This document shows, piece after piece, positions 456 to 41,600 of a DNA stretch of 64,000 nt (within the stretch, counting starts at the first letter, position 1; every line of letters starts with the position of its first letter). The position numbers were made by a program, and so were the translations under genes. The stretch spans positions 29,512,001 through 29,576,000 of the forward strand of contig NC_135760.1 in assembly GCF_052425735.1 (NCBI RefSeq). The letters run 5' to 3'. Below the pieces are notes generated by a model that had not been told where the DNA came from, searched no databases, and saw only the letters and a program-made list of their open reading frames with translations. This stretch comes from Oculina patagonica (taxonomy: Eukaryota).

Positions 456-861
456 ACAAAGATGAAAGTCAGTTGCCCAAGCCTTGCAAATTTGGCCATA
501 ATCTTTAAACTATATGATTTTTTCACTGTATCACACCTGCATGGTCAGAAATTGTCATGACCAGGCCAAGCTTTTGCTGGTCAAAATGCCAAAACCCAGA
601 ATTTCCTGGATAATAATTTATTTTCCAATGACCAACTGTTATTTTGCAGGCTTGTTACATGAGATATGAACAACAACCTCTACTGTTACAAAAAGAATGT
701 CATTCAGGGAATGAAATGTATAATGGTTTATTGTGGTTTATGATCTCTATAAAATTCTCTTCTTACATGTATTTGACCGTGTGCTTCAGGTTTAAAAAGT
801 GGGCTTGCTACAAATTTCTATGTACGTAATTATTATTTGTTTTGTTTGTTTGTTTTTGCAG

Positions 862-2383
862 AGCTACTGTTCTGTCATTCTTTTAGCAGCTGTATGCTGC
901 AGCTTTCTATGGAAGCTCACAGGTAGCAAAAAAGCCAAGAAAAAGAAACCTGGCCCTGCCAAAACTGTAAGTACTAAAGGCACAAACATTAATTGACCAA
1001 ATGGTTGATTTCAATTTTTGGTCATGCTCTATTTGTTGTTTAAATGTTGTTATGTTTTGTTGTTTTGAAACGACATAAAAGTGCAGCATGGTAAAGTGAT
1101 AAATTATTATTACCTTCATTGTAAAAGATGAAGTTTATTCCAAAATAAACTTTTTTCTTCATTCCAACGAAAAAGTAATACAAAGATATGTTTCTCACCA
1201 AAATTTCGGCTTCTAAAGAACATTCAAACCCTATGAATTCCTTGTCTGAAGTAGTCTGAAAATTGAGAACCAGCCGCCACCATCTTGGCGTAACTTAGTA
1301 GCCTGACGATGTATGTGTGACATCAAAGAGCTTGGAATTAACTTTCATTGGCATGCAGAAAAAAGTGCCATTTTGGAATGAACTTCTTCTTTAAACATGG
1401 AGGTCCCACCCCATCTGATTTATTGTGGGGACTTGTGCAAACAGTCTGGACAATCATTTTGATGATTGACACTTTGATCATCTTGTCAAGGTTATCTTGA
1501 AAGTAGGATTATTGTACTTTTTGTTGCACCCGATTTTTGGTTAACACCTTGTTAGTAATCATGTTAAAAGTAAAGAGCATAAAAAAGTTTGGATAATTGA
1601 GGTCTAAATAGTCAAATTATGTTCCTTACTGTATGCCGCTAGAAACTATGTTTTTGAAAGACAATGTTTCAAAAAATGTTTTGTTTTGATCAGATTGAAG
1701 AGATTGAACCATTCAAGGAGTTTCTATCAACACTTAAGTGTTCAATCACTGCCATGCATTCAGCACTTGAGGAAGTCAACATTGCTCAGTTGTCGGATGA
1801 ACTTTTGGAACTAAATCTTGTTGAACTGGACAATGAGGTAAATGGGTATAAAAAATTTAAAAAAAGTAAATGCTCTTGGGTAGTAATAATCAAAATAGAA
1901 CTTTGTAGCCTAAGTGAAGGCAGTAGTCTTGCGAATATCAAGTTTAAGAACTTGTCATCACAAAATTGAGTGTTATTTTTTGTCCTCTCTGTAAAGAAGC
2001 CCACCTTTTACATTGTACCTCCTTATACTTTCAAGCATCACTGTAAACTGTAGATTTGATTTGCATAATAATCATTATCTACAGGAATTAAAAAGTAAAT
2101 TACAATGAAACCCCACTCTATGGAAACACACTTATAACAGACAGTTTTGTTTGACTTGACAAAAAGCTCATACATGTATAAATTCAGTGTCCAAAGAATG
2201 TCCTTGCAAACCTTAAAAATTTAATTATTGCAAATGAAACTGTTATTGTTTGTTCTTTAGACCAAGTCTTCCATTGTGTCAGAGATTTGGGAGAAACTGC
2301 AGTCCAGCTACAAACAGTCAGTAAAAGAAATCTCAGAACTGTTACATCACAAAGTTGCATTTACCAAGTCTCTTCAAATCTAG
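862..2383 (+). CDS. NAA25: NatB auxiliary subunit NAA25, last three coding exons (862-966, 1694-1837, 2261-2383); 5' exons not resolved
   Basis: AG/GT-bounded phase-0 exons give SYCSVILLAAVCCSFLWKLTGSKKAKKKK...IEEIEPFKEFLSTLK...IWEKLQSSYKQSVKEISELLHHKVAFTKSLQI*. This resembles the NAA25 C-terminus as I recall it (poly-K tract, then KVQSSYLHSLLEMGELLKKRLETTKKLKI). Confidence 0.8.
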
Positions 2384-3989
2384 CTTTGGAGCATAAAACA
2401 AGTGAAAGTGTGAAATCAGAAGAGTGCTTATCAAGCAGCTGAGAAATGCTGGGAAGAAAAGCAAGCTCTCTCCAGCCTGCAATACAACCTGAGAGCTTTG
2501 CAAAGCAAAAGCTGCTAAAAGAGCCTTTGCTTATTATCATCTACAGAACAGTTATCATAGAGAGTCACAGTAGTGTTGTTTGTAGGCGAAAGAACAGCTA
2601 ATATTGTAGTCTGAAAACAGTGAAGAGATGTTGTCATTTTAAGAAGGTGGTAACTGTGTGTTGTATGTTTGGTTTACTTAATAGAAATGTACACTGACAT
2701 GTACAACAACAAATGGATACTACTAATTTATGAAGATATTGTTAAGGGTTCAAGTGTCAAAGCTGTGTGAGGATGTTTAGTGGTATATGGGTGGAAAGTT
2801 GAACAGTTTGTTGGTACAAGAGGTATTAGCAGCTAACATGGTCTATGGTCATTGGAGGTGCGGATTAGGGTGTTATTGAGATTGGGAAGTCAAACCCAGC
2901 CACTGCTCTGCGGCATGTTGTATTTACAGGCAACTCACTTTACTCTCACAGTGTCTGTCTCCACCAACTTACACCATGTTTACCTGGCAAGAGATTTGGA
3001 ATTAACCCATGAAAGACCAAAGAACGCTTCATCTGTGTAGAGCTCTTTGAATTAGTCATGATAGTGCAAAGTTAACTTGCAATATGGCCAAGAAAAAAAT
3101 GATGGGGGAAAGGCAATCGATTGTTCAGCACATCTCTGATTGTTGGAGGGTCGAAGGAACATTGTGTAGTCCAGTGTGTATTAGATTGTAAACTGTGAAT
3201 AGAATGTAGTGTGGAAACCATTCTGACAGTTGTTTGCAATTTAAGCAAACATTTAAGGGATTAAACCTTTATTTCATGTCAAAGATCATGGCCAGTTTAT
3301 TTCGTTCCCAAAATGATTTAAGCTGAGCCACAGGCGAGGGTTCTATCAGCCATTTGAGGGAGCGAAATGATGTGGGCATGATCTTTGTTTCTATAGACAT
3401 AGAAACAGAGGTTTTATTCCTTTTATGAAAATTAATTGCAAAGGTTAAGTGATACATAAGCATGAAAAATCAACGGCAATATTGTATGACATCTTGGAGT
3501 TGTCATGACACCGTTTTCAAGTTCAAAATGAGTTGAAAATAACTGCCAGAAATAGGTCGCTGAAAATAAACATAATAAATAATTATGCAATGTCACACAA
3601 AGATTTTGGCTCAAATTGAGTCCAATTGGACATTAAGAGAGGGGGTGTCAATTCTCTAATTAGAGTGATTTCATTTAACCTGTGAAAGAATATCTACCAG
3701 TTTGTGTGTAATAGTCGAAAGGAAACAAAAGAAAACAATGGAATTTGTGTCTAATAGTAATTAAAAGGGTAATAACTATTTCACGGATTAACTGAAATCA
3801 CTCTAGCAGCATTTCACGTACTAAACAGTTTAACCTATTCTTGTTACTTCTTAAGGACGAAAAACTGTTTGTTAGGGTCTTTCTGTACAATACAGTGCTT
3901 TTCTGTATAGTGCTTGCCATTGCAAGATGTCTGGTTCTTATGCTCATCCACATACTGGTGTTAAGGTCTCGGCTAGTGTATACCCTACA

Positions 3990-4173
3990 TAAATCCCGGG
4001 CCAAACAAGGATGAAAGTCTGTCAAACTCTCATCGACTCTCGTGAAAATTTGAACATGTTCAAAGTTGATGAGAGCGCATGAGAGTCGATGAGAGTGCAT
4101 GAGAGTTTCATGCCAAACGAGAGTGAGAGTGTGAACTCTCATCAACTCTCATCCTCCTTTGGCCCGAACTTAA
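3990..4173. mobile_element. MITE-like element
   Basis: Imperfect inverted ends (cgggccaaac..ggatga / tcatcc..tttggcccg) and internal actctcatc/gatgagagt repeats. Confidence 0.55.
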
Positions 4174-4696
4174 CTTGCATAAATTTCAATGCGACTTGTG
4201 TGATTGAACTTTACAAGATTTAAGAGTCATTTCATTCTTTTTGTTCTAGAATTTTTTGTCATCACTTTAATAAGTATTTTCTTTGTGCTATTTTCATAAA
4301 TTTTCTTTATCGAGAAGTATTGTCTCATTCACATTGATTTCCTTTCTTTTTAATTTGTTAAGAAACACATTCACAGAGTTACCAGTACTTTTCTTTTAAA
4401 TAAAGTATTTGTTGGGGAATGAGTGTAAGACTGAACATTGAAAGAATTATTTTATGGGCCCACCAGCGTGGTATTGTAATAGAAAGAAAATAGAAAAATT
4501 GAATATTAAAGACTTAGTTTGTACATATTTCATAAAATGTCTATGGCTTTACCATTCTTAAACAGCAGAAAGGCCAAAAAAACAAACATGACAACTTAGA
4601 AATAATTTTTACGATGTCGTGTTTGCATTTTTGTTAATATTTTAAATTTCATGGATATGTTGTTTTAGTGACTACTTGTACATCTCTACATGTGTA

Positions 4697-4868
4697 CAGT
4701 CAACTCTCGCTTTGCAGACACCTCGTTATTATGGACACCCCGGTATTACGGACAGGAGTTGAAGTCCCGGCAAATAAGAATTACTGAAAATAAGTCTCGT
4801 TACAGACTTCCTGTATTATGGACACCAAATGGTGGTCCCGAAGTTGTCCGTTACGAAGGGAGTTGACT
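4697..4868. mobile_element. Tc1/mariner-type MITE
   Basis: TA-CAGTCAACTC ... GAGTTGAC ends with internal ttatggacac repeats. Confidence 0.6.
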
Positions 4869-5557
4869 TTACATGCTTTCTACATAGACTGGGCTAAATG
4901 TAACACTAGCTGTGTTGTTATTTTTTAACTCTAAAGAAACAATAAAAAAAGTTTGTAAGCAATCAAGTGGTATGAAATGTGGTATGTAGCAACAAGAGGA
5001 ATAATGTCAAAATATTGTCATTAGATAGATATTTTCATATTTTCTTTTAAAAACCCCAATGTACAGATATTTGTATGGTGGTGTTGCCACACATTCATAA
5101 AAATGTCTAAACATAATTGTAACTTTTGAATGAATTATTTATAGCATGTTTTTATCCTTTGTCTTCAAATTCGGAAAGTAACTAAAATAAACTTTTCTGT
5201 TCATTTATGATCCTCTCTGATTATACAGCATTTTTTTAACAATAGCTCCAGAAAGATTGTACCATTTAGAACCATGCAAAAAAGGCAGCACGACTTATTA
5301 AGTTTAAACTTTTAATTCATTGCTGAGAAATAGGGTAGTATAATCATTTTCAGTGACCCCCCCTTACAGACCATATTTTTTGGCTGCCCCCCCCTTTGAA
5401 GCCATACTTTTTTCATGACTACCCCGTCAAATCCCACCAACCCCCCCCCCACACCTCATAAATAAACGGTCCCTAAAGTCGGAGAACTGAGTGACCCTTT
5501 AGCTTTATGCAAATCATATGGTTGTTCACCAGACTTCATGGAGTTTTGTACAATGTA

Positions 5558-5722
5558 ATAGACCCTTTGCATAAATGGCGTCTTCATTTGAATAACAATA
5601 CATATACATCCTTAGCCTCACGTTCACGTAAAAAATCCTTTGTCTAAAAACACCCACACGGGGCTAAGAATGTACATAGTATTGTTATTCAAATTTGGGC
5701 GCCATTTATGCAAAGGGTCTAT
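5558..5722. mobile_element. MITE
   Basis: TIR atagaccctttgcataaatggcg / cgccatttatgcaaagggtctat. Confidence 0.7.
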
Positions 5723-6114
5723 TCTATTTTTAACTTACACCCCAAGCAGGGGCGGATCCAGGATTTTGATTAGGAGGTGTGCACCATTAAGGGATGGCAT
5801 AACTGACTTTTTTTGCAGAATACCACTTGTATTATAAAGCCGCAGGTCATCTCGGGGGGGGGGGAGGGTTGCAACCCCTGCACCTCCCCCTAGATCTGCC
5901 CCAGCCAAGTTATGTTATTTACCCTCACTGTGATAACTTTGAAAATAGCACACAACTTGGTCTTTACATATTGATTATTAGAGACTATGCTTTTACTTGT
6001 TTACTTAATTTTGTACCCAGATGTCTTCTTTCCATGGTAGTATTGAAGATCTAGGTATGAAGTTATTCTTCACTGTGACAAACAGAATAGTCTTATGTTT
6101 GTTTTAATCAAGAC

Positions 6115-6332
6115 CAACCCTCCAAGTTTATTTTTTTCCTTTGTGGCCATTTGGCCACCGACTGCTCAGGTTTGGTCGCCAGTGAAAAATTTTAGTCGCT
6201 AAATTAAGCTTACACTTTCAATCCTTCTTCTCAATTTTAGTCGCCAGGCTGGCGACTTTGGTTCCAATTTAGTCGCCAGCTCCAAAATTTTAGTCGCCAT
6301 GGTGACTAAAATGGTCTTAACTTGGAGGGTTG
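6115..6332. mobile_element. MITE, same family as 57089-57304
   Basis: TIR caaccctccaagtt / aacttggagggttg, internal ttagtcgcc repeats, flanked by aagac on both sides. Confidence 0.75.
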
Positions 6333-7566
6333 AAGACAGTGATCACTTTTAATGGGCTTGATTCAACACGACCACCATGCAGAGAAAAATATACTAAGCA
6401 TCTGTTATTAGAATACCCCATACAGTTCTTGTACAGGAATGCTCAGATTTGCTTGCATTTTTCATTTCATATCAATTTCAGTGAAGAACAATTTGTAGGA
6501 TTTTGACACGAATTTGTGAAATAAAAAAAAGTTTAGTGTCAGCCTCCCTAATAACTGATCAAGTTAAAACAAAGCAACTCATAACTGGAATGGTGGTTTA
6601 GTTATCTGATCTGTATTTCATTACATTTCTAAACCTCAAATTTTGTCAAAAAATCTCTGCTGTGCATCATATTTTCAACTGCCTGCTCAGTATTTGGAAA
6701 TGAAAATACAAAAAGTTTTTTCATATATTAGAGACATTTGTATGGTTATGTGGCGGCAAATTATGTTTGGGCGGCACCAGAAAAACTCGGTTAAAATCTT
6801 AATGTCAACTCCACTCTTCCAGATTGGAATAAAGTATCTACTGCATTGGTACATTAGTTTCTTCGAATTGAGCACCATTCTAGGGGCTATGTTGTTGTCA
6901 AGTACGGCGGCTCTTATTTGAAGGAGGTGCTTATTTGTGTTACCAGTACTTGGGGAAGGTGCTTTTTGAGTAAATATGGTTGTGTCGATGATAAAATTGT
7001 TTTATTTGGATAAAAGAAAATGCCCATTCATGACATTAAAGACAGCTTGGGAGTTTAAAGCAGTCTGTGGTATTTGTGCAAGTACTTTTCAGTTTTCCAA
7101 ACTTTAGCCCTGGTTAATTTAATGGACTCAATGTTTAATCCCACATCTTCCAACACTGTTGGGTAAATTGTTGCCACAAAGTGTAGCCCAAAAATGCAAC
7201 ATGGGGACTGTTCCACGCAGTATTTCAAATGTTGGACCCACATTTAACCAAAATCAAACTTTTGTCCAACAGTCCCAACAGGGTGGTCAACCAGTTCCAA
7301 ACTTTGGGTTGGACAAAATGTGTTCAACATATCGGTTCATTAACGAAATGTTGGATCACTTGACCAGGGCTTTGTGAGTGTCTTATACCGGGTCACACAT
7401 GCAAGTAGACAAAATGGTAGTTTTCTATCTTCTTTTATTTAATTAAGCCAAACATCCACACAGCACCCCCATATTTTTTTATAAAATATTGTCCTGAATA
7501 ATTAAACAGAGCTCTGCTATAAAGTGTATCAAAAGCAGAGGATCTTGAACAGATGCATAAGCCTCC

Positions 7567-29600: not shown

Positions 29601-32600
29601 AGGAAAGAGAATGAGCAAATGAATGTGTCCAAGTTTTTTTAAATTGGGAGGTAATGAGATAAGCAGTGACATTTTGTATGTGTATGTGTACACAAAATCC
29701 AAAAAAACTATACCGACCTGTCTGTGTGCTGCTGCCCAAGCAAGGGGTGTCAGACCTGTTTTATCCACAGTATTAACATCTGTTCCTACAAAACACGAGG
29801 AAAATACTGACTGAGGTGTTTGAATTACAGACCCTGGCCTTTGGTAACAGTATACATTTCAGGGGACATGGCCTTGTGGGGGTTGGGGGGTGGCATCCCC
29901 TATAAAGATTTTGTGGCTGCTCATCAGAAAATTTCAAAAACACCCCTAAAAGGTAACACGAGGACCTCATTTTGTGGGGTGTCCCAAAACCATTTTCACC
30001 ATAAGAGGTACCAATAATAAAATAACAAATTAAGTGACACAGGCAATTTGATGACTGGATGACTGTTTTCGAGTAGATAATTCAGGACTAAAAAGTCATT
30101 CGTATAACAAATACAGTTACTGCTCCCATCATTTTTTAGATCAATACCCTTGAAGGCCCATTAGAGGTACTGCGACAACTGTAGCAGCGTTTTAGGAATA
30201 CGCATCCTTAGCAGTACCAATCAAAAATTTTAACCCCTAAAAGGTATGACAACCACCCCTGTTAATTTTATAGGGGAGTTCCCCCCAGAAGGGGGGCATG
30301 GCTCCTGATGAGTGAACATTGACATTGGCCAGCCAAGTTAGCCACATCCAAGACGGAAATCATTCTTGAAAACTTAAGCTCCTGTTCATAATTTAATTTA
30401 ATGATATTAACTTTAGTTAATTTAGGTTAATGAATAAATGTACAATCGCCAGCGTATTATATTTCACGATCACATTCGCGTCGATCGCTACATCGTGTTA
30501 GGCTAGTTTCGTTTTCTCTCGTTTGTATTTTCACATTTACGATGCCCGGTGGCAAAGCAAAACGAAAATCCAAGTGTCCTGGCTGCCACACAGCCCACTC
30601 TCAACATTACTTCGGACCGCCAGGCCCTCAGTGTTCCGGCGAACAAGAAAGTGAACAAGACGGGGAAGATATTCAGGGCGCCATGGCGGATCCGCCCCAT
30701 AAAAGCCCCAAAACCACAGCCAAAACCGAGGATATTTCTGCACTCCTGTCCGCGGTTCGAAGTTTATCAGACCAAGTACACGACTTGGCCCTGGACAACA
30801 AAGCGATCAAAGACCAGCTGGCACAACAACAGATTACAGAGCCAAAAGTCAACCCAACGAGTCCGGCGCCCAAAGATGCGTCTATTCCTGTCTCCAACAA
30901 CCTCGCCGCCGCTGCACAGGATCGCTCACGTACCAAGCTTGTCGAAGCCATCACTTGAGGTAAGTTCGTTCACTTTATCGAGCTTCTTCGCCTCGAGGGA
31001 GATTTGCATGCGAGCGAAGGTCAGCAAGTGATTATCACGCCCGAAGGCCAACTGTTTACAAAACGTGCTCGACCCCAACGCGACATTTCCTCGTTCGACT
31101 TATGGCTCGCCGCTTGGTTCCAGTTCGAAAAGATTCTGGTAAACGTACACCCTAACCGCTACTCTGAGCTTTGTGCCTATCGTGAAGTCATTCATGCCGC
31201 CAGTAGGAAATTCCGCTGGTCCTCTGTTTACTCCTATGATGTCCGTTTCCGCACGAAACTCGCGAATGGAGAAATCGCCCGCTTCGATCAGCTGGATCAA
31301 ACACTTTATACCACCATCCTCGATGCTACAGCCCTCCGCTCTGACGCCAGGCAGTGCGCTCGCTGTAAAGGATACGACCATTTGGCCCGCGAGTGTCCTT
31401 TTCGTTCGCAATCCGCGTTGGAAAAAACAAAGGAGACGCCGACGCAGGAGGCCTGGAAACGAGAACAATGGTTCCACGATGGAAAGGAGGGATGTAATCT
31501 CTTCCAGCGCAATTCCTGCTATTTTGGAAACGCCTGCCGACGGGCACACGTCTGCAAAAGCTGCAAAGGTAATCACCCCTTGGCAGATTGCTCTGTCGCT
31601 ACCTAAGCTCTGGTCCCCGTTCCACGTAGCCACCTGGAGGGAAGCGTTACGAAATCACCCTGATCGTCATTTCGTGGACGGACTCCTTCACGACATTGAC
31701 AACGGTGTGGCACTTGGCTACGAGGGACCAAAAATTTCGCAGTGCCACACGAATCATTTATCTGCGACTACGAACAGTCACTCTGTGATTCATGAACTCT
31801 CACGTGAACTTAACATGTACAGAAAAGCCGGGCCTTTTCTGACACCTCCCTTTCCTGATTTTGTGGGTTCGCCACTGGGTGCAATTCCGAAGAAACACTC
31901 GAATCCTCCACGTTACCGTCTAATTCATGATTTATCGTGGCCTGCGGGCCGATCAGTTAATGACTTTATCCCGCCGGATAAATTTACTTGTCAATACGAC
32001 ACCCTTGACCGCGCCATCTCCTTTATCAAACAAGCCGGTCCAGCAGCACAAATGGCTAAACTAGATTTGTCGGACGCGTATCGTCACATTCTCGTTCGCC
32101 CTCAAGACTGGCCTTTACTAGGCTTTACCTGGCCCATATTTGTGGATGGGTCTTTACGTACGGGATACTTCTTCGACATGTTCCTCCCCTTTGGCGGTCG
32201 CAGTGCTCCGGCACTCTTCCTTCGTTACGCGGACGCTCTTGCCTTCGTCATGGCGGACAGAGGTGCCTCCACAGTTTGGCACTACCTCGATGACTTTTTT
32301 ACATGCGGCCCCGCCTCCCCCTCCAACCAATGTCGACACAACCTAGATGTCATGGTTTCTTCCTGTCAATTACTAAACTTCACACTAAACCAAGACAAAC
32401 TCGTCCATCCGACAACCTGTCTTACCCTCCTAGGCATCGAGCTGGACTCTGTTGAATGCGTTGCCAGAATTGACGCCACACGGTTGGCCGAAATCCTTGA
32501 TCTAGTATGCTATTGGTCAACTCGTACAAAAATCACCAAACGGGAACTGCAGTCCCTGCTGGGGAAACTAAACTTCGTCTGCAACGTTTGTCGTCCTGGA

Positions 32601-35600
32601 CGGACCTTTCTATCACGCATGCTAAACCTTTTGTCTAGGGTACATCAACCCCACCATCATGTATGTCTCACCAACGCGTTCAAAAAAGACTTAAAGTGGT
32701 GGGAGTTGTTTCTCCCAACGTGGAATGGTAAGAACTTCTTCTTCGACGACCACTGGAGCAGTAACACTCTGTTGGAATTCTACACCGATGCCAGCAATCA
32801 GGCATTCGGGGCTTACTTCCAAGGGGCGTCCCTTAAGAAAAAGTCTACCCTGTAGAAACCCTGTGGCAGCCCAGTAAAATCCTGTTTCCAGCCCTCTTTA
32901 GTTATTTACAAGGCTGAAAACTAGACGTGGCAGGGTTGTAGCAGGGCTGCAACATAACCTGAGTTAAGACAAGCAGAGCTGTGACAGGGCTGTAAAGATT
33001 AAAAGCAAAGTACAACAGGGCAGAAACAGGGTTGTAACATGACTGGGAAGATATACATGCATAACAACAGGGTTTAAACAGGGCTGCCAAGTCATACATA
33101 GACAGTAGAACAGGGTTGCTAAATGGCTGTAAGTTATAACACTGCACAATAACAAGCAGGGCTGTGTTGTAAGTGGGTTCTAGCAGGGCTGTGAAATTTA
33201 TTAAAGGGATTTAAGCTAAAAAAAAGAAAAGAGCATAATGATCGTTCTTATAAACAAGTCGTGGCATAAAAGCTTGATAAGTCTCACATCCGTGTACACA
33301 TGCATCTGCTCGGTTAGCGACTTGCTTGAGGGCCGACAAGTAAGTTAACGCAAATCAAACACATGACCGAAAAGTTTAAAAAACCAATTTTGTTTGTATT
33401 GGCAACATAGCAATGACAAGTTAAAACTTATAAAAAACAGCAAAAAGAAAAATGTTTAAGCTAATTAACATAGCTGAACACGGCTATCAAAGTTTCATTA
33501 TTTAATTTAGTGTTTCTGTAAATATCGATTGCTTCCACAAGTTCTGTACCCTTTGTCGTATGAAATTCAGAGGGTCTTTGTCAAACGTAAAAGTTAAATG
33601 ATAAAATAGAACCTCTCTTCAGCTTACCATTTACTAAGTATTCCTTATTCCGGTATCATTTATAGGATCGCTGTTCCCAATCATCCATTGAACCGGGATT
33701 GAAGAGTGTGATAAGCGATACTTGCGTCGATGAAATAATTTCCAGTGCCTTCGTTAATTCTTAATTTGATTCCTATGAAAACTATAGCTTTCAAATTTAT
33801 AGAAATATCATTAAAGTTCGGATTATTTTGCAGCTGAAGTGCTTCCATGTCCGCTGCAAAAAGAAACACACATCAAGGACGGTATTTTGCTTTGCTCAGT
33901 GCTAGTCTCTCAGCGGTCAACCTGGAAGTGAGGTTGTCACGTCACACAGCGAAATTTCCTTTGGGTTCATCACGCAATCTTTCATCCTGCGGTCATTTTT
34001 GCAGAAACCTTCTTGCAATTTTTACCGGATTTTTTTTTAGAACGGTTACAGTTAATAGACGTCTTAATTTGGAAGAATTATACAAACACCGTGCAAGCTA
34101 GGCGACAGAATTGGCGACAGAAACGTCAACAGAGTAACCAGCTTCTTGTTTTTGCCCGGTACCCGGGTACCCTGAGTAGTTTTGACTTCTCGACCCAGAT
34201 TTCCCTCGGGATGAGATCCATCCAAAATGGCGGCTCGTTCATTGGAGATCGCTTTGTAGACCATTGTAGGAAATAACAGATCGATTTGGAAATAGCATGC
34301 CGATTAAGTTTACAGGATGTTGTCAATTCAAGGAAGAGAAGACCGTGGTGATAGTATTAAAGCTAAGTTGAAGATTTTATTGATCGTTTTACCAAGGTTG
34401 CACATCGTTCGTGATCTGATTCTGTTATTGTTCCCATCGAGTACACCTGAAGCTATTTGATTAGGCGCAGAGAACGTCTGTACTTTTCGATGTCTTGTAA
34501 AGTTTTAATCTTTTCCCATTTATATCTCTTATTGATTCAAGCGTTGAAGAGTATAGAAGTTTATGTAGTATATATAGTCAAAATAAAACTGCAGCGTTTC
34601 TAGCTTGTTTTAAACATGATTAAATAAACTTAATGATATAAGCTTATGTTCACTGTACAATTTTAAAGCCAAGCAGACAAACAATCATCAAGACATGGAA
34701 ATTGATTTCTGTAGCTTTTAAAAATAATTATTGTCTTAATATTTTCTGTTCCAGAAAACTTTTCAAAAGACAGCCACAAGGCAGGAAGCTCGTGATCCTG
34801 ATTTTGACCTAACAAAAGACACAGAAAGTAGTAACTCTGATCTTGTAAGTCGTTTGTTTAAAATTCTACTTAATGTCACATCAAAGTTTGCCTTTATTAC
34901 CTGGTATTAATTTATGTGCAATAAAAAGCTGAGATTGGCAAAGAACAGTTGGATACCATTATTTACTCCTAAATCTATTGATAAATTATTAGAAATGTAC
35001 TTTTGACTGTAACAAAATTGCAAGGTCAAATTATAGCACATCCTAAGTGTAAAAACCTTCAAAATCACCAGTTACTTAAAAAAGTAAGGACCTGGAAGAC
35101 AAAGAACTCAAAACAACGTAGAACAGGAAAACACGCGCGGGCGGGGGGGGGCGGGGGGGGGGGGGGGGGGCCGGGGCGGGGGGGGCGGGGGGGGGGGAGA
35201 CGGGAAGGGCGCGCGGGGAGGAGGAGGAGGGGCGGCCCAAACACACGGAAAAAGGAAACTATGTCACAGTTTCTTACAACAAACTAAACCTCAAATTATG
35301 TAGTATACGAGCTAAAGAGATTTGAAATTCCTCAAGTGAAAAAGAATGCTTCCAAGATTCATCAAGGCATGCAATGTTTTTTATGAAAGATGAGGGGAAC
35401 CTGATTCTTTCCTCTTCAAATTAAACATCTATTTCAATTTCTGCTTTTTTTCAGGATGATGACATTGAAGAGAAGACAAATGAAGTTGCCCACTACACTA
35501 AAAATAAACATATAAGTGATTACGAGAAACAAAACTTAAGAAATATTCGACAAAATCAAGAGAAGATCAAGGAACTTGAGCTAAACATTTTGGTAAGTAT

Positions 35601-38600
35601 TATAGTTAAAGCACATTTAGACAAAAGTATATACATCATATAGTATCTATAACCACTCTTTATTTTACATGGGAAACTGGTTCCTGAGAAAAAGGAGAAA
35701 TCCAAATTTTGCAATATGAAGCAAATGGTCTCTCTTTTATCAATGTAGGGGAAACCTGGAAGTCAACTCTCTGCTCCAAAGAAAAAACCTGAAAAGCCAC
35801 AACTAGCTAAAGCTGCCACTGTAAGTAATTTTCATACATTAATACTAGAACACAGTCATGTATTATAAATAATAGCGAAAGTATGTTCCTTTTTTAAGTT
35901 GTAGACTTTATATTGGTTTTTATGTTGACAGAAATGCTTGAAATGTGATTTAACTTTTTGGTGACTTAAATCTGAACAATTAATGATCATACCTGTCCAG
36001 CACAATAACAAATTAAGAACATTTCAATCTATTTAAAGTGTCAATTTTCCTTAATAATCAGACATAATTATAGTATTGCCAGAGTGTGCACTGTCAAATG
36101 AATACAAAACTGTTTTGTAACAATTTGACACTTACCAGCAATTTTTCGCAGAAAAGTTTTGGATTTTGAAGGCAAGTGCGTGAGGGATTCCTAGTTGAAA
36201 GCAGGCAATGGCAATTTTTACTTTTTCTCTTGATTACATATCCAGATAAGGTAATATGTTGTCCTGTTCATTCTGTTAGGAACCAGCCAATACCTTAAGT
36301 CCAGGCACTTCAAGGAATTCTCCCACACAAGTGAGTTTCACCAAAAACTGCTCTTGTGTTTATGTTATTAATTTCCTTCATTTTTAAAATTTATACTTCC
36401 TCCTTTGCATTAACTTCCTTAATTCAGGAGTAAATTTTTTTCCAATTTGCATTACTGACTAAGTCACATTAATTTCAAATACCTTGATCAAATTTTATTT
36501 TCCTTTGATAAAGTTAACAACTGTATTTACTTTCAATCCACAGCCACATTCTCAAGCAGCTAGTTCAGACTCACAGCAGTCTCCTGCTGGGAATGTCACC
36601 ATCATGAAGGTTAGAAACTACTTTTAATATATATATTTTTAGCAGCTCAGTCGGCCGAAGCAGTGGGTAGGAAGAGGGGTCACACAAAGAGCACAGACAA
36701 AGAGAGGAAGCGACGAGGGAGAAGAAGGAGGGAGGGGACCCGAAACGCAACGCCCGCCGCACCGCCGCCGGAGCAGGCCCACCACTGATCGTCATCGAGC
36801 GACGTGGAGAGGCAGCAGACAGAGAGAAGAGTGGCGCATCCGCGGGGAGGAGGGGCAGGGGCAAGAGCGCAGCCCCCGCGACCGGGGCCACGCACGGAAG
36901 CACCGGCGAGCCGACGCCGAAACGGCCGCGAAAAAGGCAGCACCGAAGGGGAGCACGACGAGACACCGCAACGCCACCGCGCGACCCGCCCCCGACGCCA
37001 CCGGCGGGAGAGCCGCCGGACGCCGGGGGGACCCGAGCGGGGGGCGGGGCGAGAGACGGGGGAGGGGACGAACCGAGAGGCTATGGACGGGCGAGAACAA
37101 GGGTTCGTGTTCGTCGAAAACAGAGGTCTCGTCAAGGAGAACAACAGAGTGGGAGCAGCAGGCGTGCCAGCGCCCCGCCAGAGAGGGGAGGAGGAGCCCG
37201 AGGGCAGCAGGAAAGTGAGGGGCCGCAAGCCAACCAGGCAACACCCAACAGGACAACACCCAGCACCCCAAGCCACCCCAAAGAAAAACTCCTGCACGCT
37301 TAGCGTGCCTATGTTTTGCTTAGTCATCATTACATGTTAGACAAGTAGCTTTGTAAAATAAGTACTTCAATGTACAGTTGCACTAATCAAAGCAAGAGAA
37401 TATGTTACCTGAGTCACTCTTACGCAGTAAGTTCCCTTAACACATTCGCAAAGCTTGCTTGCTATCCCTGGTCTAAAATATGAGCTGTGAATATTGCATT
37501 CTTTCCTTGCTCTGATTCTAGTTGCTGTGACTGTTTATATTTTACTTTGAATAATTATAGTAGTGATTTTGATTTTCATTTCCTTCTTTCTCATTTTTAA
37601 GAGTGAAGTTAAACTTGTGGAGCTGGTCTCAGGAATGGGAATTTTTCTCAGGGCAGACAAGCTCTCCTTGGCAATAGAAAAATCGAAGGAGATACCAACA
37701 AGGCTCCTTCGTACATTAATGGACATGTTTTTTACCCCAGAAGTAATGGCTGGAAGTACTGCCAAGGGCAGTTTAAAAAGAGGGCTTGATGCTCTGGACC
37801 CTCAAACAATGGAAGCTTTATACCGTGAGTATTGTTACTACTATTTTCTTTTCATTTTTATACCTGCCAACTCTCACGCCTTCGCCTGCGAGGTGAAAAC
37901 TTCGATCTCATGCCAACTCACGCTTACGCACCAATTTCTCACGCCTAGTCAATGTACTGGGATTGGGATATGTTCGCAACATCTTCGGAATCGCAACATC
38001 TTGGACGTCTTCGGAAAACTTCGTACATTTTCTTATTGGCTTCGGAAATCCTGCCACTCTCAGGATAAAAATCTCACGCCTTTGACCCAGAAAAAGTTGG
38101 CATGCAGGTATACATTATAAAAAAGGCCAAGTAAAAAAATGAAAAGATTAGTATTAAGCATTCAACACATATATATGTATAGAATGCATATGTATGTATT
38201 GACATTATTTAGTTGGGCTGAAATGGAGTCCTCTAATACCATACCACCCTCATGTATACCATTTTTAAGCCTTGTCTAAAATTGCAAGACATTTAATTTA
38301 ACCTTTACTCAATCTACATCCAACTTTTACAATCATGCAAAGCTCATATAAATATATCTAATTATCTCCACAGGATTTGTCATTGCTAAACACCCCGGAA
38401 AGACGATTTACAAGGAGTTGGTGAATGAGGCAAATGATAAATGTTACAGTTACAGAAGGAAACAAAAACAGAGCAAATGACATTTTGAAACTGACCTCAG
38501 TATACATTAAACTCCACAGAACTAATTATAATCACACATTTCTAGATATTTCCAGCTCTTTTTGGCCATAATTTGTTAAGAAAGCTATTTTAATAATATT

Positions 38601-41600
38601 ATTGTGCACTTCAATTATGCATGTAACTTAATAATTTTAAGCCAAAAAAGTCAAATATAAAAGCATTTGAGTTTGAAATGAACACTGTAACGTAGTAAAA
38701 AAATTGTTGACTTTTACTTGATAGTTGATATTATAAAAATTGTGAATGTATGCTCATTTATCAAAGCAAGGTTAAAATATATATTTCTTTTGGCAATTCA
38801 TACTCTGGTTGATTTTCAAGCTGTTGATTTGTGCAAGTTTAGAATCTTTTTGTACTATTGCATGACATTAGTACAGGGTTGCACTAGCCATGTAAACTAG
38901 CTCCTGCAGGGCTGTTTCATGGGGTCTACAGAGCCTGCTGGTTTAAAAACTGTTACAGGGCTGTTACAGTTTGGCTACTTGGTAGAAACAACCTTGCTAA
39001 CTGTGCCAATTTACGAGCTGCAACAGGGCTGTCCTGGACAAGCCTCAGAACAGCCTGTTACAGGCTTGGTACAGGGCTGCCACAGGGTTATTGTTGTCAT
39101 TAAATAGGCAATACCATGACAGGGCTGTTACAGGGTTGCTGCTTGGTAGAAACAACCTTGCTAACTGTGCCAATTTACGAGCTGCAACAGGGTTGTAACA
39201 AGGTCCTTTTTACACCCCTGTTACAGGGCTCCCAGGGGGTTTCTACAGGGTAGACTTTTTCTTAAGGTGGCTCTTCGACACCTTCAAAACTCATGGCATT
39301 CCCACGCGCTGATCAATCGCCTTCAAGGAGCTATTTGCAATCATCGCAGCGCTAACCAAGTGGGCACCACGACTCACTGGCAAACGTATCCTCTTCCACT
39401 GTGACAATGAGGCCGTCGAACATATCCTTCAGAGAGGCCGCAGCGTGTGTCCCCACATCATGACCCTCGCTCGTTATCCATTCTTCCTCTGTGCACATTA
39501 TAGCATAGAAATTTCTGCTGTACATATCCCAGGTGCCCAGAATAATCGTGCTGATGCCCTGTCTCGTTTACAGATCAGTCGCTTCAGATCCTTGACACCA
39601 GACGCCGACCCATATCCAACTCCAGTACCAGAGATCTCCCTGACTCCCTTCCGATGAAGGTCAACTACTATTTCCAGCATGGACTGGCTCCTTCTACTCA
39701 GCGTACCTACAGCGCTCCACAGCGTCAGTTCATAGCATTCTGCACTCAGCACCAACTCCAGGCCCTGCCGGCTTCGCAGTACACGCTCCAATTGTTCGCA
39801 GCTCATTTGGCCCAACGCCTCAAGCCCCAATCCATTCCAGTCTACCTCGCGGCAGTTCGCGCACTCCACATAGCCCACGGGTTCGACAACCCCCTGAAAG
39901 ACACCTTACAGCTGAAACAAACTCTACGGGGCATCTCCCGTGTTCACGGCGAACCACCCACACAAAAGCTACCCATTACGTTTGACATCTTGAATTCCAT
40001 GCGCCCACTCATTAATATCAGCCTCCATGACGACCTGGTATGCTGGGCGGCTATGGTCATCGCACATTTCTTCCTGCTTCGCTGTGGCGAATTCACGGTC
40101 TCCCAGCCAAATGCCTTCTCTCCTGCCTACCACCTCACGGTCGCCGACCTACAACTCAAGACATCCTCAGAGGGCCACCAGTACGTTGCGCTACGCCTTA
40201 AGACCTCAAAAACTGACCAATTTCGTCGTGGCCACGTCTTATATGCGGGCCACAGCAGCCACCATATCTGTCCTGTCTGCATCGCGTCTCAACTTCTCGC
40301 CTTGTACAATGGCAGCAATACTCCTGCAGACTCCACCCCTTTGTTTGCTCTAGATGACAGATCAGCTTTATCCCGTCCAGTTCTTCTGAAATTTGTATCC
40401 CAGCAACTGCGTCTACTCGGTTTTGACCCCTTAGCATACGGAGGCCACAGTTTTCGCGTAGGAGGGGCCACCTCTGCAGCATCTGCTGGACTGAACGACT
40501 ACGCAATCAAAACACTTGGCCGCTGGTCATCAGACTGTTACCGTAGATATATACGTACCCCTATCTCCAGTATATTACAGCTTTCCTCCAAAATAGCCAA
40601 ATCAGGACACTCCCAGTACTGTTATGCAAACCCTTACGATATTTAATTCCTATTATTATTAGCACTTTTATTATTTTTTTTCCCTTCTCTTATTATCCGT
40701 CTATTATTTTCATTACTTCTTGGGTCCTTAGCTTTTTTTGGGCAGTTTATAGGTTGACCCAGAAGTCCCTATCAATAAAGTCTGCCCACGTTTTTACCAA
40801 ACACTTTCGTTTTATTGTTGTGTGCATGTAATTAAATGATATTAACTTTAGTTAATTTAGGTTAATGAATAAATGTACAATCGCCAGCGTATTATATTTC
40901 ACGATCACATTCGCGTCGATCGCTACATTGTGTTAGGCTAGTTTCGTTTTCTCTCGTTTGTATTTTCCCATCCCTCCCTCCCAGGCAGTTTATAGGTTGA
41001 CCCAGAAGTCCCTATCAATAAAGTCTGCCCACGTTTTTACCAAACACTTTTGTTTTATTGTTGTGTGCATGTAATTAAATTACATTAAATACAGACCCCC
41101 CCCCCCCCCCTGCTAAAAGGTACTAACGCAACTGTGGAATATGAAATGGAAACTCCTAAGAGATGTCAAAACATGATTTCAACCTCTAAGAGGTACAAGA
41201 AGCATCCCCACCATTGCCAAAAAAGTTACCTCTCCCCCCTGGGCAACAGAGACTTCCCAGAGCTCCTACCATGGCACCCTGTGTCACTAGTCACCAGCAC
41301 ATCCTTCAACTACCGGTAATACAACCCTAATGGAAATTGATGGGGCAGCACTTCTCTTTCTCAGGAATATAGCAACTGAAGTGGCCTACAGAGACCAGTA
41401 AATATGCCAAAATAAAGCAATCTCATTAGTTTTGTTAAGAAACAATTCCTTGTCTCTCAATCTCGGTCTAGAATCAGTAGATCCAGAATCAGTAGATTTT
41501 TGGACCGTTGTAATAATGTCAGCAAACACATAGTTAGTAGAGCTATGCCTAACAGGACCAATTAATCCCATATTTAAACACACCTTTGTCAATTTCTTCC

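Follow-up and report, generated by a model that had tools for sequence, protein, structure and literature searches.

A conserved, putative docking helix in the BEN-domain partner protein of a two-gene coral transposon family

A short amphipathic helix encoded by an exon at 35455-35592 (+) of the window (the 64,000-nt stretch of Oculina patagonica DNA analysed here) is conserved and probably serves as a docking helix; it sits centrally in the accessory ('ORF2') protein that a two-gene coral transposon encodes. The copy that the window carries is inert for this function, and the architecture that gives the helix its likely context comes from related elements. The helix had attracted attention through its likeness to a motif of the chromatin proteins WDR76/Cmr1 and CDCA7, and below we weigh that likeness against more mundane explanations.

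The gene containing the helix is transcribed and spliced. A 1089-nt contig (record 17) from RNA run X3 aligned to the locus with 0 mismatches and joined 34844/35455, 35592/35749, 35820/36280, 36330/36544 and 36609/37602, with GT..AG at every intron, and a contig from run X4 (record 22) joined 37824/38374. The resulting window gene has seven exons and lies within a 6.4-kb element with terminal inverted repeats (TIRs). The first exon seen in RNA (34297-34844, +; X3) ends in 90 nt (34755-34844) that are a coding exon in the intact gene (77% amino acid identity to 7238-7327 of the related locus L003 by tblastn) and are preceded by a conserved acceptor, ttgttccag/AAAAC. The motif exon follows as exon 2 of the window copy, corresponding to exon 4 of the intact gene; it is flanked by ...ttttcag/ and /gtaagt and translates as DDDIEEKTNEVAHYTKNKHISDYEKQNLRNIRQNQEKIKELELNIL. 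Exons 3 to 5 (all +, from X3 splicing) encode a linker: a basic segment, GKPGSQLSAPKKKPEKPQLAKAAT, at 35749-35820 (75% amino acid identity to L003 8597-8668), a Ser/Pro-rich segment at 36280-36330 and a last segment at 36544-36609, which contains the first in-frame ATG, at 36604. The BEN-like domain begins in exon 6 (37602-37824, +; X3) and ends in exon 7 (38374-38480, +; X4), with the stop codon at 38478-38480. Within the motif exon, the helix itself, SDYEKQNLRNIRQNQEKIKELEL, spans 35515-35583 (+), and its hydrophobic residues (Y, L, I, I, L, L) are spaced i, i+3/4/7. AlphaFold2, given the exon alone, predicted a helix at residues 22-45 with a pLDDT of ~96. The exon and peptide of the original prediction are thus real, as judged from the mismatch-free RNA contig with its GT..AG joins and from the confidently predicted helix.

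The reading frame of this gene is less straightforward. The RefSeq product of LOC144645779, P0001, is a BEN-only protein of 111 amino acids that ends in ...CYSYRRKQKQSK; its start Met spans exons 5 and 6, and the motif exon lies upstream of this annotated start codon, with 12 upstream ATGs before the 111-amino acid ORF. The spliced ORF from the window locus comes to ~250 amino acids. P0001 matched the Pfam BEN profile (PF10523) at positions 2-62 of 76 with 16.4 bits (E = 0.011), below the 23.2-bit cut-off, and a single-sequence AlphaFold2 model of it was all-helical and poor (pLDDT 50). A GC-rich stretch at 36641-37309 was considered as coding sequence and ruled out, as it is intronic and missing from another assembly.

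The TIR element occupies 32831-39267. Its left TIR (CCTTAAGAAAAAGTCTACCCTGTAG...; 32831-32877, +) and right TIR (39221-39267, -) form 47-nt arms that are 91% complementary, and just inside them lie two arrays of the motif CAGGGYTG, with eight copies each by motif count, at 32931-33191 (+) and at 38874-39195 (+), the latter including two 87-nt direct repeats. Both arrays fall within ~350 bp of an element end, and these two subterminal regions hold 16 of the 19 matches in the window, all on the + strand, against a whole-window expectation of 2.4. By blastn, window positions 33380-33934 correspond to L003 7-562 and those from 34162 onward to L003 6638 onward; the two elements are otherwise collinear, and L003 563-6637 has no counterpart in the window element. 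The junction at 33934-34162 therefore marks an internal deletion of ~6.1 kb, and Pfam searches of the window element's other ORFs revealed no remnant of a transposase. On this comparison, the window element is a decayed, non-autonomous internal-deletion derivative of a two-gene transposon, in which the deletion removed the transposase, exons 1-2 of the partner gene and its ATG. As a result of the deletion, the helix exon is transcribed only within a long leader, rich in upstream ATGs, before the BEN-only ORF and, as the helix is not preceded by a start codon, the window copy itself cannot run an anti-silencing system.

The missing parts are present in L003. A 948-amino acid ORF at this locus matched PF02992 (Transposase_21) with 38.2 bits against a cut-off of 28.6 bits, which places the transposase in the Transposase_21 (CACTA/En-Spm-like) family and points to a stony-coral transposon that has two genes and moves by cut-and-paste. 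The putative partner gene of L003 comprises nine exons, all with AG/GT boundaries (exon 1 was joined to exon 2, and exon 2 to exon 3, solely by reading phase and canonical splice sites), which together form an uninterrupted, ATG-initiated ORF of 431 codons. Its putative product starts with a small domain at the N-terminus, continues through a coiled-coil segment of basic character and an acidic tract of Ser and Asp to the helix, and ends with a low-complexity basic linker followed by the BEN-like domain at the C-terminus, with the motif near residue 230, ~90 residues upstream of the BEN-like domain. The coiled coil upstream of the helix in this intact type of protein, NTEKIQSLQTEVEELKAKLRAASERKAKTK, is longer and more typical than the helix. 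A transposon protein that joins the helix to a BEN domain, as originally proposed, is therefore upheld in part: the gene does lie in a transposon and does end in a BEN-like domain, and the L003 ORF contains both modules, but the annotated 111-amino acid product of the window copy lacks the motif exon. Two further relatives are informative. In L002, an 87%-identical family copy, the 1.2 kb that precede the BEN exon contain neither the motif exon nor the linker exons. L004/L005 is a distant homologue that is expressed but carries a frameshift inside BEN, so that it too is a decaying copy.

The helix is conserved under purifying selection across this family. The motif exon shares 80% amino acid identity with L003 7739-7873 and 42% with L004/L005 (tblastn), and the pattern SDYE...L.NI..N..KI.EL.L..L is invariant across the three available motif-exon sequences (window, L003 and L004/L005). 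Such conservation in two independent relatives makes the motif more than a product of chance, and it bears out the expectation of the original prediction that copies of the element would retain it. The ratio of non-synonymous to synonymous change (omega) for the motif exon is ~0.22, an estimate based on six synonymous and eight non-synonymous changes. Values for the linker exons range from 0.6 to 2.3 (0.62 for exon 3; ~2.3 for exon 4, on 17 codons), and that for BEN is 0.07 (exon 6 compared with L003; 0.29 compared with L002). Relative to L005, the motif has a dN of 0.36, compared with 0.75 for the remainder of the exon.

The likeness to host proteins was assessed with the pattern YE..R..NI..N...L..LGL, which we take to describe the helix of WDR76/Cmr1 and CDCA7-like proteins; it is an uncurated pattern, fixed before any relatives were compared. 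The window exon matches 7 of its 10 fixed positions, with Arg replaced by Asn and Gly by Glu, as does L003, and is the sole match of at least six positions in the six-frame translation of the window. When the window was shuffled 300 times with its composition preserved, 2.7% of the shuffled sequences gave matches of at least seven positions, so the 7/10 match alone is only mildly unusual. The helix of L004/L005, LSDYELVRLKNIEENNKKIKELGL, matches 9 of the 10 positions, with Ile for Leu in addition, and has the Arg and the LGL that are absent from the window copy. In ungapped comparisons with helices that were likewise uncurated, human WDR76 and yeast Cmr1 aligned in one register with BLOSUM62 scores of 51 and 56, which none of 500 shuffles reached, and the human CDCA7 helix gave a weak score of 28 (P ~0.05). 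In this single register, the uncurated WDR76/Cmr1 sequences and the coral helix share [YF]-[EQ]-x-x-R-L-x-N-I-x-x-N-x-x-x-hydrophobic-x-x-L-x-L; of the 27 residues compared, 9 and 8 are identical in the window copy, and L005 has more identities; unlike WDR76/Cmr1, the coral protein has no WD40 propeller (no WD40 match) and ends in BEN. The helix of CDCA7 (HLBH, or 'leucine zipper') is comparable in its length of ~25-30 residues, its acidic, Ser-rich tract before and basic stretch after, its position N-terminal to a DNA-binding domain and, in the uncurated sequence used, its N-I-x-x-N core with L..L spacing downstream. It differs in register upstream of N-I, and the coral DNA-binding domain is BEN-like rather than zf-4CXXC_R1, for which no exon gave a match. 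The resemblance thus appears closer to WDR76/Cmr1 than to CDCA7, a ranking based on uncurated sequences.

Database searches did not extend this likeness. Searching the exon with phmmer against 1.84 billion representative proteins returned no matches at E ≤ 0.001, which rules out recent capture of a host WDR76 or CDCA7 exon while leaving room for motif-level kinship. Pfam searches of the exon and its L003 and L005 counterparts gave nothing relevant, PDB searches by exon sequence and by a three-sequence profile gave chance matches only, a word search of the 46-amino acid exon against proteins of 25-80 amino acids gave no candidates, and scans of JGI metagenomes with the exon and with the family alignment gave none. 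The uncurated CDCA7 and WDR76 helix peptides matched no PDB chain and no full-text literature. The proposed likeness to WDR76/Cmr1 and CDCA7 therefore holds up in part: L004/L005 fits the pattern better than the window copy does, but the profile search of the peptide produced no database or profile match to either protein.

How might such a helix act? In the explanation that we favour, the BEN domain would bind the element's own ends, with the CAGGGYTG subterminal repeats as the candidate target, and the helix would dock a partner protein, most likely a host chromatin factor, and so recruit it to those ends. A quite different account, in which the exon is non-coding leader and the motif appears only by chance when an A-rich 5' UTR is translated, would fit the position of the exon upstream of the annotated start, behind 12 upstream ATGs. 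We regard it as scarcely credible: the frame runs without a stop through the 142 codons that precede the first Met, where the other five frames contain 5-19 stops and shuffled sequences remain open in a fraction of just 5e-5, the exon shares its frame with the ATG-initiated 431-codon ORF of L003, and the exon has an omega of 0.22 with conservation concentrated on the motif. A more serious contender, although clearly the less likely one, is that the helix serves the transposon machinery, through self-association or contact with the transposase, and that its WDR76/CDCA7 likeness reflects convergence of a common type of charged amphipathic helix. BEN proteins often combine a coiled coil with a BEN domain, and this general pairing, the i, i+3/4/7 hydrophobic spacing, the 2.7% of shuffled windows that reach 7/10 by chance and the lack of database-level likeness to any host protein would all suit such a role. 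However, a longer and more typical coiled coil already lies upstream, the invariant polar residues S, D, E, N and N are unusual for a plain zipper, and the distant homologue gains both remaining pattern residues, for which a back-of-envelope estimate gives a chance of ~0.003. Because of the separate coiled coil and the invariant polar residues (S-D-Y-E and N-I..N), docking of another protein is favoured over plain self-association.

The most specific proposal is that the helix is a HELLS binder of the CDCA7 HLBH/WDR76 type, which recruits or titrates HELLS at BEN-bound ends and counters silencing through methylation or chromatin. Its premise that an N-terminal helix of CDCA7 engages HELLS is confirmed by the literature: HELLS binding requires this helix (human residues 108-140; Xenopus CDCA7e residues 74-105), which pairs with the CC2 segment of HELLS, and Nematostella has both HELLS and CDCA7 (PMC11343034, PMC11417364). 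WDR76 homologues co-purify with HELLS, MUS-30 and Irc5 (PMC4714748, 10.1101/650028), and the plant Spm/CACTA protein TnpA, a sequence-specific anti-silencing factor at clustered subterminal motifs (10.64898/2026.08.24.746577), provides a precedent. The family motif also fits the pattern (7/10 in the window, 9/10 in L004/L005), and the two residues that the window copy lacks, Arg and Gly, are precisely those restored in L004/L005. The scores of 51 and 56 with the uncurated WDR76/Cmr1 helices were unreached by 500 shuffles. We nonetheless consider this proposal improbable. The comparison sequences are uncurated; phmmer, Pfam and PDB gave nothing; the match to the uncurated CDCA7 helix is weak; the WDR76-HELLS association is salt-labile (10.1101/650028), and in the cited papers the contact was not mapped to the N-terminal motif (PMC4714748, 10.1101/650028). 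The window copy, moreover, cannot make the helix from an AUG. Methylation in cnidarians is mostly gene-body methylation, and may thus not be what chiefly restrains these elements. Still less probable is the full chain of events, in which the BEN protein of an intact copy, seated on its own subterminal repeats, docks HELLS CC2 through a WDR76/CDCA7-type helix and, by recruiting HELLS or competing with CDCA7, alters methylation or chromatin. If true, HELLS docking would be an animal counterpart of plant TnpA/VANC anti-silencing, achieved by mimicry of a host adaptor helix.

Two-gene DNA transposons with an end-binding second protein are known in plants, where that protein can undo methylation silencing. 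Arabidopsis TnpA, for example, causes sequence-specific hypomethylation of element termini (10.64898/2026.08.24.746577). Like TnpA of plant CACTA/En-Spm elements, the coral protein is the second gene product of a Transposase_21-family element, and its predicted DNA-binding domain goes together with short repeats clustered in both subterminal regions of the element. In contrast to TnpA, its DNA-binding domain is BEN-like, its host is an animal and its element's termini have no CACTA start; plant TnpA also uses active demethylases rather than a DDM1-binding helix. The BEN second protein of the coral family keeps a helix in which the invariant positions fall on those of an uncurated motif ascribed to two host partners of HELLS. 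Should the docking helix that we favour bind HELLS or another host chromatin factor, it would offer a compact, testable case in which a transposon has copied an adaptor peptide of its host and, if so, a handle on the role of the uncharacterized N-terminal motif of WDR76/Cmr1. If there is no docking, the helix would still add a conserved module to the little-described transposons with BEN partners.

At the termini of the family, the sequence CCTTAAGAAAAAGTC... occurs at three independent ends and CACTA is absent. A target-site duplication of TTAA, or none, fits the insertion, and a 3-bp duplication does not. The palindrome CCTTAAGG was considered as an 8-bp target duplication and ruled out, as it is common to L003 at an unrelated site. 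The end sequence of the left TIR recurs at the right end of L003.

The exon at 35455-35592 on the + strand (exon 2 of the window copy, exon 4 of the intact gene) is flanked by a polypyrimidine-AG acceptor at its 5' side and a GTAAGT donor at its 3' side, and translates as DDDIEEKTNEVAHYTKNKHISDYEKQNLRNIRQNQEKIKELELNIL. RNA contigs of four public runs were mapped onto 33100-39000. One run (X3) yielded a single 1,089-nt spliced contig with 0 mismatches to the window, joining + strand exons at 34844/35455, 35592/35749, 35820/36280, 36330/36544 and 36609/37602, all across GT..AG introns, and a contig of another run (X4), from a source copy ~98% identical, contained an additional join at 37824/38374. 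These spliced contigs indicate that the motif exon is real, transcribed and properly spliced on the + strand. AlphaFold2 modelling of the exon alone returned a helix at residues 22-45 (pLDDT ~96). The exactly matching RNA bears out the exon, and the model the helix.

Joining the RNA-supported exons gave a reading frame open from 34740 to a stop at 38478, whose sole in-frame ATG (36604) falls in the last nucleotides of exon 5. RefSeq annotates LOC144645779 with exactly the BEN-only, 111-aa protein beginning at this ATG, and 12 out-of-frame ATGs lie upstream of it in the RNA contig. The 142 codons 5' of this methionine contain 0 stops, compared with 5-19 in each of the other five frames, and only 5e-5 of shuffles keep them open, which argues that the motif exon is coding sequence whose start has since been lost. 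The 111-aa product scored 16.4 bits against Pfam BEN, below the cut-off of 23.2, and its structure model from single sequence was poor; we term this C-terminal domain BEN-like.

A word search with the 111-aa protein identified BEN-exon fragments in other assemblies, the contigs of which were then compared. One related copy, L003, occupies 20 kb of an ENA contig 608 kb long. It aligns collinearly with the window element (75-91% nucleotide identity), with the exception of L003 563-6637, which is missing from the window. This segment includes a 948-aa Transposase_21 ORF on the opposite strand (PF02992, 38.2 bits, cut-off 28.6) and two more partner-gene exons on the + strand; the ORFs of the window element gave no transposase match. 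Nine L003 exons, seven of them common to the window and all with AG/GT borders, form an unbroken 431-codon ORF starting at an ATG (joins 1-2 and 2-3 were set from phase and canonical sites only). The putative protein opens with a small domain, continues through a basic segment that includes a coiled coil and an acidic Ser/Asp tract to the helix at about residue 230, and closes with a low-complexity basic linker and the BEN-like domain. Its first exon (5172-5316; MVYYVVQFDVDSKTSAVEEKKVLSRDGNRCEIRWSKTKTFMATIVGDG) had no Pfam match. Given this collinearity outside 563-6637, the window copy derives from a two-gene transposon by internal deletion, and its accessory gene is 5'-truncated.

To assess conservation, we aligned the motif exon in three independent forms: the window copy, L003 (80% amino-acid identity to it) and a distant homologue, L004/L005, represented by a pair of spliced RNA contigs from other runs (42% identity over the motif exon, 73% in BEN). 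The helix positions S-D-Y-E...L.N-I..N..K-I.E-L.L..L were invariant, and just 4 of 19 positions were kept in the exon's first half. By the Nei-Gojobori method, omega between the window and L003 was 0.22 for the motif exon (6 synonymous and 8 non-synonymous differences, small counts), 0.07 for the BEN exon and 0.6-2.3 for three linker exons; between the window and L005, dN was 0.36 in the motif part, where dS was saturated, and 0.75 in the remainder of the exon. Retention of the motif among copies, as anticipated, thus held. A non-coding artefact is excluded by the open frame, the in-frame L003 ORF and this omega. A further copy, L002 (87% identical), lacks motif and linker exons over the 1.2 kb that precede its BEN exon, so the layout is not kept by every family member. 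The two contigs of the distant homologue, from two runs, share an identical frameshift in the first BEN exon (L004 658-760, L005 450-550), indicating that this transcribed copy has also decayed; its helix is nevertheless the most canonical of those aligned.

The helix had been likened to those of WDR76/Cmr1 and CDCA7 through a proposed pattern, YE..R..NI..N...L..LGL, fixed before the relatives were known. The window copy matches 7 of its 10 fixed positions, as do 2.7% of shuffled windows, and this match taken alone is weak. The distant homologue (LSDYELVRLKNIEENNKKIKELGL) matches 9 of 10, with Ile replacing Leu, and has precisely the Arg and Gly missing in the window copy; we take the chance of both to be ~0.003, a rough estimate of our own rather than one computed with a tool. 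Ungapped, the window helix scored 51 and 56 (BLOSUM62), in one register, against putative human WDR76 and yeast Cmr1 helices, values attained by 0 of 500 shuffles; against a putative CDCA7 helix it scored 28 (P ~0.05). All three reference peptides are provisional and could not be matched to a sequence in PDB, papers or supplements. An exhaustive protein search with the motif exon returned 0 matches at E ≤ 0.001. The family thus carries a motif that follows the proposed WDR76/Cmr1 pattern; its homology to the WDR76/Cmr1 or CDCA7 helix is putative.

The CDCA7 N-terminal helix (Xenopus CDCA7e 74-105, human 108-140) is needed for HELLS binding, and its predicted pairing with HELLS CC2 extends across animals and plants, Nematostella included (PMC11343034, PMC11417364, PMC11995263). 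Homologues of WDR76 are recovered together with HELLS, MUS-30 and Irc5 in purifications from human, Neurospora and yeast (PMC4714748, 10.1101/650028), the human association being salt-labile (10.1101/650028); the texts consulted do not map it to the WDR76 N-terminal motif (PMC4714748, 10.1101/650028). In plants, the TnpA proteins of Spm/CACTA elements counteract silencing in a sequence-specific manner, acting on clusters of subterminal motifs (10.64898/2026.08.24.746577). This literature renders biologically coherent the proposed chain from motif to HELLS binding to anti-silencing, each link of which we infer.

The proposed likeness survived in part, with the pattern and the WDR76/Cmr1 scores in its favour and the empty protein search and low CDCA7 score against it. 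The same evidence bears on the legitimate, testable hypothesis that the helix of intact members recruits or sequesters HELLS, which we consider improbable. A more prosaic rival, in which the helix serves self-association or transposase contact and the likeness is coincidental, would fit the empty search; we regard it as possible, if doubtful. Our results point, with rather better than even probability, to a conserved docking helix of a BEN-type accessory protein from a Transposase_21-family two-gene transposon, the window copy being dead, non-autonomous and without an AUG-initiated helix.

The 6.4-kb element (32831-39267) is bounded by 47-nt terminal inverted repeats and carries eight + strand copies of CAGGGYTG within ~350 bp of each end, against a chance expectation of 2.4 in the entire window. 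These 16 subterminal copies (32931-33191 and 38874-39195) run in the same direction at both ends and are therefore direct, not mirrored, whereas the termini are inverted. All three available termini (32831-32838, 39260-39267 and L003 11454-11460) read C-CTTAAG-(G), suggesting that the palindrome CCTTAAGG either belongs to the element or is a TTAA-centred target with strong preference; such ends depart from what is expected of Transposase_21 elements, namely a CACTA terminus and a 3-bp duplication. The element interrupts a degenerate DIRS-type retroelement (30391-41088) within its reverse-transcriptase/RNase H region. The retroelement contains one RVT_1 ORF, another that is tyrosine-recombinase-like, and repeats of 146 nt. 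This host has repeats of 146 nt and 105 nt (97% identity) and a frame shift and stop near the insertion site, and the same nest occurs in a second assembly.

Within BEN-gene introns lie two stretches rich in GC and purines (35134-35248 and 36641-37309), which have several frames open on both strands. Both are missing from the same locus in that assembly (GCA_044670265.1, elsewhere 99.9-100% identical), and runs X1 and X2 likewise gave contigs without them, with a joint at 36637/37314; they could be polymorphic insertions or assembly-specific. The last BEN-gene intron contains a short repeat (37859-38102), missing from L002, whose contig depth reaches the hundreds to thousands in each of the four runs, with many diverged copies and loose ends, resembling a very high-copy MITE/SINE-like element.
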